The notes beneath the pieces are model-generated. The model saw only the letters and a list, made by a program, of their open reading frames with translations, was not told where the DNA came from and searched no databases. Shown piece after piece: positions 51,601-54,600 of a stretch of 64,000 nt of DNA. Source of the DNA: Laetmonice hystrix. Its lineage: Eukaryota. Each line of letters opens with the position of its first letter. Positions within the stretch are counted from its first letter, which is position 1. A program made the position numbers and the translations under genes. The stretch covers positions 1,798,001 to 1,862,000 of the forward strand of contig OZ249442.1 in the NCBI GenBank assembly GCA_965235115.1, in the 5' to 3' direction.

Positions 51601-54600
51601 TTTATAATCAGTTAGCGCGCTACCGATGCTACGAAAGATGTTGTCACTGTAAGCGCCACATCATTTATCATTAAACCACTTCACAGCCGCTGGCTTGCTG
51701 ACGCCTATAGGTGGCGCCTGAAGGTGGCGCCCTCTAGTGTTGTTCCTCACCTCGTCAGCCAGGATGAAGAGGCTGTGACGCTTGGCGAACTTGATGATCG
51801 CTTCAATGTTCTGACGTGTCAAGACTTGACCTGAGGAAGGAGAGCCCAAAAAGTCGGTCAGTGGTCTACACGCTAAAAGGTTCTTTTAAGGTCAAATACC
51901 ATCTGTTCTCAACACATAGAGATACTGTCATCACTCATCTATAAATATTGGTATATCAAACGTTGTTCTCAACACACACAGACCAACGCTAGAGATACTG
52001 TCATCACCTATCTATAAATATTGGTATATCAAACGTTGTTCTCAACACACACAGACCAACCCTAGAGATACTGTCATCACTCATCTATAAATATTGGTAT
52101 ATCAAACGTTGTTCTCAACACACACAGACCAACCCTAGAGATACTGTCATCACTCATCTATAAATATTGGTATATCAAACGTTGTTCTCAACACACACAG
52201 ACCAACCCTAGAGATACTGTCATCACTCATCTATAAATATTGGTATATCAAACGTTGTTCTCAACACACACAGACCAACCCTAGAGATACTGTCATCACT
52301 CATCTATAAATATTGGTATATCAAACGTTGTTCTCAACACACACAGACCAACCCTAGAGATACTGTCATCACTCATCTATAAATATTGGTATATCAAACG
52401 TTGTTCTCAACACACACAGACCAACCCTAGAGATACTGTCATCACTCATCTATAAATATTGGTATATCAAACGTTGTTCTCAACACACACAGACCAACCC
52501 TAGAGATACTGTCATCACTCATCTATAAATATTGGTATATCAAACGTTGTTCTCAACACACACAGACCAACCCTAGAGATACTGTCATCACTCATCTATA
52601 AATATTGGTATATCAAACGTTGTTCTCAACACACACAGACCAACCCTAGAGATACTGTCATCACTCATCTATAAATATTGGTATATCAAACGTTGTTCTT
52701 AACACACACAGACCAACCCTAGAGATACTGTCATCACTCATCTATAAATATTGGTATATCAAACGTTGTTCTCAACACACACAGACCAACCCTAGAGATA
52801 CTGTCATCACAGTTTGACATTGGTACCGACCCTGACGTACCTGTTTGACATTGGTACCGACCCCGACGTACCTGTTTGACATTGGTACCGACCCCGCCAC
52901 CGACCCCGCCGTACCTGTTTGACATTGGTACCGACCCCGCCACCGACCCCGCCGTACCTGTTTGACATTGGTACCGACCCCGACGTACCTGTTTGACATT
53001 GGTACCGACCCCGACGTACCTGTTGGGTTTCCGGGGTTGATGATAACGATCGCCCTAGGAACACAGTTGGCGCGTTCCGTCTCCAGCGCTCTCTCCAACT
53101 CAGCGATGTCTAACCCCCATTTATTGGATTCGTTCAAATAGTACGGGATCTAGGATCGAAGTAGAGAGATTTTAGTGAGGTTATCCGAGCTTCTCTCGCT
53201 GTAGGAACATTTCTCCGCTATTGTCGTACACATCAAGCTACATGAACTTGAAGTAAATTATTATGGTAAGAATAGTGTTATTCATTTCCTGTATACTATT
53301 AATTTCTTTCCTCACTTCAATCTCAATAAATTGTATAAGATGTACAGGCACAGATTAACATTTAATATTGGCATTTCAAAAAGTTATAATCCATTCGCAC
53401 AACCACATAGTAATCAGTATTTAAGACTAATTTGGTTAGACTTGGGTTTCTTCATGCTTGTATTAAATTTTAATACGACAGAGCAATACATGCAGCCACG
53501 TGGGTAGCAATAACAAATAATCAAAGCAATGACAGCAATCAGCGAAACGATTTATTACCTAACAAATTTAGAAATTACTGAGCAAAGAACGAGCCGCCTT
53601 TTTTTCTTTCTTTTCCAACCAGACGCCAAACTGATGCGAGATCCTGAATATGTTGGGTCAAATGGAGGCTTGCCTTTCACTTACCATGTGGGCATTGTAT
53701 TCTGCTATTGTAGCAGTGTAGAGTGGGTACTGAGGGATAGGGATGAGGACTCCAGCAGCCTCAGGACCAGGTCTGGCTGTCATCATTAACTTGATCACAG
53801 ACTACAACAAGCATCGTAACAAACCATCAAGCTCAACACCCGCAGTTCGTCCCAACCGCCGCCGCCAGAGGGCGCGAGACGACTGCAGCGCCACTCGGCG
53901 GTGGCCGCACATACAGAACACGACGTGACAGTCAATGAAACTAGAACATTTGCAGCAAGTCATTAAACACAAAATCAGTCTCGCTTCAAAACTCGTAATC
54001 GTATTAGTAACAAAAGCAAGTCTGTAGGGGGCGGCAAAGTAAGAGCTCTTGCCGCAGTTTTCAAAACTTAAGTTTTCAAAACTTAATCAGAATCCATGCA
54101 CACGGCAAGCCATGCCTTCGTCATGCTGGTACGCCCTCTGGTGGCAATCTATGAAAACAAGACTGGTACAGTGGCTCCCCCTGGCTTACGGAATGTGCGT
54201 CGTGCTCTGAAATGATGGCCGTGTAGAGTGGATAGACTGGTACAGGGATTAGGAACCCAGTCTGCTGGCCTTGGCTGTAGTTGTGCGTGTTCAGCAGCAG
54301 CATCAGAGCCTGTGGTACACCCACGGCAATATCAAGATTAGGGACAAGTTAACGTTTACATCCCCATACTGTAGGCCTTCTGTAAAATACTGTCGGCCTT
54401 CTGTAAAATACTGTAGGCCTTCTGTAAAATACTGTAGGCCTTCTGTAAAATACTGTAGGCCTTCTGTAAAATACTGTATATAGGCCTTCTGTAAAAATTA
54501 CTAAAATACTGTAGGCCTTCTGTAAAATACTGTAGGCCTTCTGTAAAATACTGTAGGCCTTCTGTAAAATACTGTAGGCCTTCAGTAAAATACTGCAGGC

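Follow-up and report, generated by a model that had tools for sequence, protein, structure and literature searches.

Splice variants that can be relied on to yield functional protein isoforms are few, and alternative exons that arose by tandem duplication belong to them. Cases in core metabolic enzymes, PKM and PFKP being two of them, are scarce and of physiological importance. In exons 9 and 10 of PKM, and in other human events (PMC9741552, PMC8373072), two adjacent homologous exons of near-equal length and the same phase encode one and the same segment of an enzyme. As in the pair described below, the copies of PKM and PFKP differ at a residue beside the ligand site, and one of the two copies is the default. 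A relative from the same family as our gene is the vertebrate pair GPT and GPT2, which code for the alanine aminotransferases (ALT) ALT1 and ALT2 and give each organism two versions of the catalytic domain. Here, we describe two exons, A and B, in the ALT gene of Laetmonice hystrix, contained in a 64,000-nt stretch of DNA (the window: positions 1,798,001 to 1,862,000 of the forward strand of contig OZ249442.1, assembly GCA_965235115.1). The exons are adjacent and homologous, share the same phase, are of similar length and are bordered by canonical splice sites, which is the anatomy of mutually exclusive tandem-duplicated exons. The pair belongs to a known class, that of tandem-duplicated alternative exons, and occurs in a gene for which we found no prior description of such exons. 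Literature searches for mutually exclusive exons in ALT or other aminotransferases retrieved only unrelated clinical and transcriptome papers, and neither GPT nor any other aminotransferase is mentioned in the main text of the paper on tandem-duplicated exons in humans. This is in line with an earlier note on the window, made from the sequence alone, whose author knew of no mutually exclusive exons described in ALT.

Exons A and B are a true tandem exon duplication inside the only ALT gene of the genome. In a global alignment they are identical at 17 of 39 residues (44%) and at 65 of 117 bases (56%), with the same codon used at five of the 17 common residues; both are flanked by AG and GT, and both keep the motif P-x-P-x-Y-P-L-Y. 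Each exon is the sole match of the other in the 627-Mb assembly (E ~1e-3; 60% identity over 25 residues), where searches with four different exon probes identified a single ALT locus. The best matches of both exons in the PDB are human ALT2 (3IHJ) and barley AlaAT (3TCM), as corresponds to members of this family: exon B aligns to residues 170–203 of the human protein (E 3e-5), exon A to residues 180–203 (E 2e-4), and both align to the matching stretch of the barley enzyme. A chance similarity between A and B was considered and rejected, because the exons are reciprocal sole matches in 627 Mb and match the same ALT residues. The peptides and coordinates given for both exons in the earlier note were exact, and translation confirmed their phase 0-0 and their AG/GT borders. 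The figures above also bear out its description of two strongly diverged copies that remain open and keep the motif, and the positions that it assigned to the flanking donor and acceptor (57489 and 53149) agree with those of our gene model.

The duplicated segment corresponds to a part of the cofactor pocket. According to work on human GPT that combined kinetics with modelling, Tyr189 stacks on the ring of pyridoxal 5′-phosphate (PLP), replacing Trp141 of GOT1 (PMC8875635). By alignment, the first Tyr of Q-Y-P-L-Y occupies the position of Tyr189, which substantiates the claim of the note that the YPLY segment lines the PLP pocket. The exon is thus predicted to encode the cofactor-stacking loop and the strand leading into this loop, and we take it to cover, in addition, a surface loop and the tail of the helix that comes after the GAS loop, which binds phosphate. 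As to the putative catalytic residues, A and B each contain the PLP-stacking Tyr, and the Schiff-base Lys motif is found in exon E8.

In exon A, the Q situated directly before the PLP-stacking Tyr is replaced by V, and the preceding P-I-P reads P-V-P, giving PVPVYPLY. All the canonical ALTs that we examined have a Q at this position, namely those of lizard, bird, orthonectid, human and barley and four full-length homologues (P0057, P0090, P0096 and P0146), and likewise five B-type exons and loci L006 and L007. Among the residues that are invariant in the canonical ALTs examined, exon A alters this Q only, with P, P, Y, P, L, Y and A being kept. The qualification of this change as unusual, made from the window sequence, holds with respect to canonical ALTs, but the change is not without precedent: V is found at the same position in an ALT gene without introns on a metagenome contig (L012; PVPVYPLYS) and in ALT2-like proteins of the corals Pocillopora and Stylophora (cluster P0007; PIPVFPQY). 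Because V occurs in the L012 gene and in the coral proteins, a V next to the stacking Tyr appears to be compatible with a working ALT. In these cases the V also precedes the stacking aromatic residue, but it is fixed in a separate gene and not carried by an alternative exon. Corals contain several ALT2-like genes with PIPVFPQY, where V stands for Q, F for the stacking Y and Q for L, and the P0007 cluster appears to be a divergent ALT-like subfamily. A literature search found no biochemistry of natural V-type ALTs, either from corals or for L012.

No sequencing run is on record as RNA. Four runs contain the locus; run X4 (58 Mb of contigs) was judged to be RNA-derived from its contigs and is the only RNA-like one, the other three being DNA runs from one sample. 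A 2078-nt contig of X4 covers B and E6 and omits precisely the intron between them (53150-53684; GT..AG, minus strand). Of its two loose ends, the one at 53803 is the reverse complement of the last bases of E4, and the other is that of the start of E7. The transcript reads E4-B-E6-E7, with A skipped, and contains the junctions 57489-53801 and 53685-53149, both of which had been anticipated in the earlier note. Exon B is the default choice and the exon present in the dominant mRNA. The three DNA runs revealed nine variant sites, all of them in the intron between B and E6 and none in A, in B or in the A-B intron; this clustering, seen in one individual, may reflect haplotype structure or constraint.

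Related ALT loci were found via open reading frame (ORF) fragments of exon E10, and four assemblies from ENA were compared (L008, L009, L010 and L013). In all four, introns are situated as in the ALT gene of L. hystrix, and the constitutive exons are ~76% identical to those of L. hystrix in L009 and ~64-70% in L013, L010 and L008. L009 is the closest relative among the loci with a compared A/B interval; by E10 alone the closest is P0001 (85% identical), which lies outside the four-locus comparison of A and B, and L011 starts too near E10 to cover the pair. L010 contains a pair at the orthologous site, flanked by E4 and E6, with the variant copy upstream, the standard copy downstream and both intact. 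Its A-type exon (8201-8311, 111 nt, phase 0-0, acceptor ttgcag, donor gtaagc) is followed by an intron of 292 nt, a B-type exon (8604-8717, 114 nt) and E6. The A exons of L. hystrix and L010 have in common a run of ten residues, S-E for A-E, and a final Ser. The A/B pair is therefore present in two of the five related genomes, L. hystrix included. More distant loci, one of them vertebrate-like, are single-copy: L005 (orthonectid), L006, L007 and the intronless L012. Exon E10 is a single exon in L. hystrix, L009 and L010, and is split by an extra intron after ca. residue 22 in L008 (9631-9693 / 9989-10144) and L013 (9180-9245 / 9959-10114), which is an intron gain or loss character for ordering these lineages.

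Proportions of nonsynonymous (pN) and synonymous (pS) differences were computed on a core of 23 codons, from a conserved Gly to the end of the exon. In this core, pS was saturated for every pair of exons (0.6-1.0), reaching 0.82 between A and B of L. hystrix, whereas pN was 0.21 between A and B of this genome and 0.03-0.13 among B exons of different species. With pN values of 0.21-0.25 against a saturated pS, both A and B show constraint at the protein level. A neutral copy of such an age should have lost the motif, whereas A keeps it in all but the Q. Whichever the history of its origin, the A-type exon seems to be under selection and not in decay.

The splice sites and the intron between the copies were examined for signs of regulation. 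The pyrimidine content of the acceptor is lower for A than for B both in L. hystrix (0.52 vs 0.59) and in L010 (0.48 vs 0.67), and this poorer acceptor of A in the two species fits a regulated, normally skipped exon. Either/or use of the two exons is something that we infer purely from the architecture of the protein, because a protein with the two copies would have a core strand and the cofactor loop twice, and one with neither copy would be deprived of them. The lengths of A and B are both multiples of three, such that double inclusion and double skipping keep the frame and escape nonsense-mediated decay (NMD); neither the frame nor NMD would thus enforce exclusivity. Likewise, with an A-B intron of 388 nt and U2-type sites, steric or U12 mechanisms do not apply. 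The fold of this intron is unexceptional (z = -1.25). It contains an inverted pair of 14 nt (53861-53874 / 54132-54145, 257 nt apart; GCCACCAGAGGGCG / CGCCCTCTGGCGGC on the RNA strand), which forms a long-range stem in the centroid fold and whose sequence presumably resembles the core motif of CTCF. The A-B intron of L010 has a different, unrelated local hairpin of 16 nt (8418-8475). Another potential pairing, of 19 nt and 79% complementary, involves positions 54345-54363, which are 36-54 nt upstream of the acceptor of A, and the 5′ part of exon B (53775-53793). This weak pairing, which has no counterpart in L010, would loop out exon A if formed.

We consider it fairly probable that A is a V-type exon under constraint that is spliced in place of B in certain tissues, stages or conditions. 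The mRNA in which A would replace B would be a minor or condition-specific one and give rise to a V-type isoform of the catalytic domain, distinguished from the B isoform by the residue that adjoins the PLP-stacking Tyr and by the helix and loop close to it. A number of results weigh against this interpretation. The ALT contig of X4 skips A, and no contig of this run lies over exon A; since X4 was kept as contigs, which lose rare variants, this absence means that the A form does not predominate in the sample. Thus, of the two isoforms from one gene proposed in the earlier note, the B isoform is found in RNA, but a transcript containing A is not seen among the X4 contigs. In three of the four relatives (L009, L008 and L013) there is one exon, of the B type, and neither flanking intron contains a recognisable trace of A, so that the long-term selection on both copies that the note had also proposed agrees with the low pN under a saturated pS and with the A-type exon of L010, but not with the occurrence of B only in these three. 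When proteins were searched by words, neither exon A (40 aa) nor the open frame of 75 aa that contains it gave any candidates, although this null result is weak because short exon ORFs are seldom called, and the A exon of L010 is itself not a called ORF. Finally, none of the known mechanisms of exclusivity (steric, U2/U12, NMD, competing RNA structures) was found for A and B, and there is no docking/selector pairing or inverted repeat common to the A-B introns of L. hystrix and L010. Some of these results would also be explained if exon A were an unused relic, always skipped, with the gene making the B isoform only: the only transcript seen skips A, the pyrimidine tract of its acceptor is poor, and its absence from L009, L008 and L013 indicates that it is dispensable in related lineages. 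Additionally, a random frame of 40 codons is open ~15% of the time, and openness alone is thus weak evidence of use; a very recent loss of use would also be compatible with the sequence. We nonetheless regard a relic as unlikely, because pN between A and B is as low as 0.21 with pS saturated and all the conserved motif residues but Q are kept, because the A-type exon of L010 has the same ten-residue core with its frame and splice sites intact, and because an intronic 12-mer, GTTTCATTGACT, is common only to the two species bearing the pair. Much more improbable still is that A behaves as a plain cassette exon, at times retained alongside B or skipped along with it, leading to in-frame proteins of little or no catalytic use. 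The phase 0-0 and the lengths of both exons would allow these products to escape NMD, the length of the A-B intron is sufficient for splicing, and the donor of A would come close to the acceptor of B through the 14-nt inverted pair. However, the abundant transcript carries B alone, a duplicated core strand and PLP-stacking loop would be hard to fit in the fold of a class I aminotransferase, and the fact that A conserves the catalytic motif implies that this exon is translated as part of a working enzyme.

The replacement of B by A in some mRNAs does not depend on how the pair originated, and the possibility of two origins concerns only whether there was a single ancient duplication. When the A/B columns are excluded, the constitutive exons give a tree that groups L. 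hystrix and L009 with 95/97 support and leaves L010 outside. Since L009 lacks A, either an old pair was lost at least twice or there were two convergent gains. Two independent duplications, in L. hystrix and in L010, that converged on PVPVYPLY are a serious possibility, to which we give somewhat less than an even chance. Besides the grouping of L. hystrix with a relative without A, they would account for the states that A of L. hystrix shares with its own B (the L of GxL, the final A-H and a longer loop), which fit a separate origin or gene conversion. Moreover, PVPV also occurs together in the unrelated L012, hinting that both changes are coupled and could recur, and the exon tree, built on 39 columns, was unresolved and did not group the A exons; an approximately unbiased (AU) test rejected neither a common nor a separate origin of these exons. 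Conversely, pN is 0.25 between the A exons of L010 and L. hystrix and 0.35-0.40 between the A exon of L010 and any B exon, and nonsynonymous four-point sums favour the grouping of A with A and B with B (0.41 vs 0.76). The layout, with the variant copy upstream and the canonical copy downstream, is identical in both species. Their A-B introns also share, in the same order, the 12-mer GTTTCATTGACT and a 10-mer, TTGTTTTCAT (Table 1); a common word of 12 nt was reached in four of 500 shuffles. Neither word is present, with up to one mismatch, in the E4-B introns of L009, L008 and L013, and GTTTCATTGACT is absent from the whole E4-E6 interval of these loci, the sole other near-match being that of TTGTTTTCAT, with one mismatch, in the B-E6 intron of L008. 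Both words have UCAU (YCAY-like) cores and might, speculatively, be sites for splicing regulators. The data fit both an old duplication followed by losses and two independent duplications converging on PVPV.

The ALT gene is otherwise intact, with at least 12 exons, GT/AG at every junction and consistent frames (Table 1). Its ten exons E3-E12 align in order with lizard ALT1 (P0026), with ~53% identity; E2 spans the end of the window and E1 lies ca. 4 kb past it. Exon E6 matches the Pfam profile PF00155, that of the class I/II aminotransferase fold, with 19.8 bits (cut-off 19.7; profile positions 117-159), and E4 shows a weak match to the same profile (14.1 bits, E 0.026, profile positions 38-78) that is under the cut-off of 19.7.

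Table 1. Exons of the L. hystrix ALT gene, splice sites of the duplicated copies and intronic words shared with L010. Positions are those of the window; a slash marks an exon border.
Feature	Position	Strand	Description	Basis or counterpart
ALT exon E3	58967-58859	-	Ends GHSI, phase 1	tblastn with lizard ALT1 P0026; splice sites read
ALT exon E4	57622-57489	-	Donor at 57489 is the upstream donor common to A and B	
Exon A	54309-54190	-	120 nt, 40 codons, phase 0-0; variant copy, V replaces family Q	
Exon A splice sites			Acceptor ...accacag/G, weak pyrimidine tract; donor TCC/gtaagc	
TTGTTTTCAT	54160-54151	-	10-mer in A-B intron	L010 8391-8400
A-B intron	53802..54189	-	388 nt	
GTTTCATTGACT	53941-53930	-	12-mer in A-B intron	L010 8542-8553
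Exon B	53801-53685	-	117 nt, 39 codons, phase 0-0; canonical copy	
Exon B splice sites			Acceptor ...ttgttgtag/T; donor ATG/gtaagt	
ALT exon E6	53149-53020	-	Ends NPGNPT, phase 1; acceptor 53149 is the downstream acceptor common to A and B	
ALT exon E7	51830-51751	-		tblastn with P0026 and P0007
ALT exon E8	50676-50543	-	Carries the SxSKG Schiff-base lysine motif (reads STSKGYMG); tblastn with P0026 and P0007	
ALT exon E9	50451-50343	-		tblastn with P0026 and P0007
ALT exon E10	48978-48757	-		tblastn with P0026 and P0007
ALT exon E11	48022-47910	-		tblastn with P0026 and P0007
ALT exon E12	45700-45610	-	Stop included	tblastn with P0026 and P0007

Long and very regular minisatellites occur in nearly all the introns of the gene, with units of 21, 35/74, 73 and 43/74 bp, among others, spanning positions 54366-55853, 57142-57459 and 52500-53020, plus further arrays within ~45800-51500. 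The 21-bp minisatellite (54366..55853, ~70 units, identified with Tandem Repeats Finder) fills much of the intron between E4 and A and ends 57 nt upstream of exon A. A 73-bp minisatellite (57643-58554, 12.5 copies, 98% alike) is situated in the intron upstream of E4 and reaches this exon. Each of its units copies the acceptor of E4 and the first bases of the exon (...ctgccgccag/GTGCCTACAG), and the array thus places ~12 decoy 3′ splice sites ahead of the true E4 site.

The pair in L. hystrix differs from those of the PKM type in that here we infer both the use of A and the exclusivity, and in its patchy distribution, since it is found in two of five related genomes. The comparison with vertebrates is also of interest, because these have two whole genes, both of the Q type, whereas in L. 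hystrix a single gene would vary only ~40 residues, including the change of Q to V. Tentatively, and we hold this broader proposal to be possible although doubtful, the single-copy ALT would switch its active-site neighbourhood by exon choice, placing either a Q-type or a V-type residue beside the stacking Tyr and changing the helix and loop next to it, to give two enzymes with different kinetics or substrate preference. The roles suggested in the earlier note, such as alanine production in anaerobiosis or osmoregulation, are speculative. Such a switch in worms would be similar to that of PKM1/PKM2 and would replace the GPT/GPT2 gene pair of vertebrates, being either ancient and repeatedly lost or evolved twice to reach the same PVPVYPLY. 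If A were never used, the locus would be a well-dated case of a duplicated exon that persists with its motif intact. If A is used, an either/or exon beside the PLP-stacking Tyr would constitute a compact natural experiment on the tuning of catalysis by this pocket, and would show how animals with one ALT gene gain the isoform diversity that vertebrates draw from two genes.

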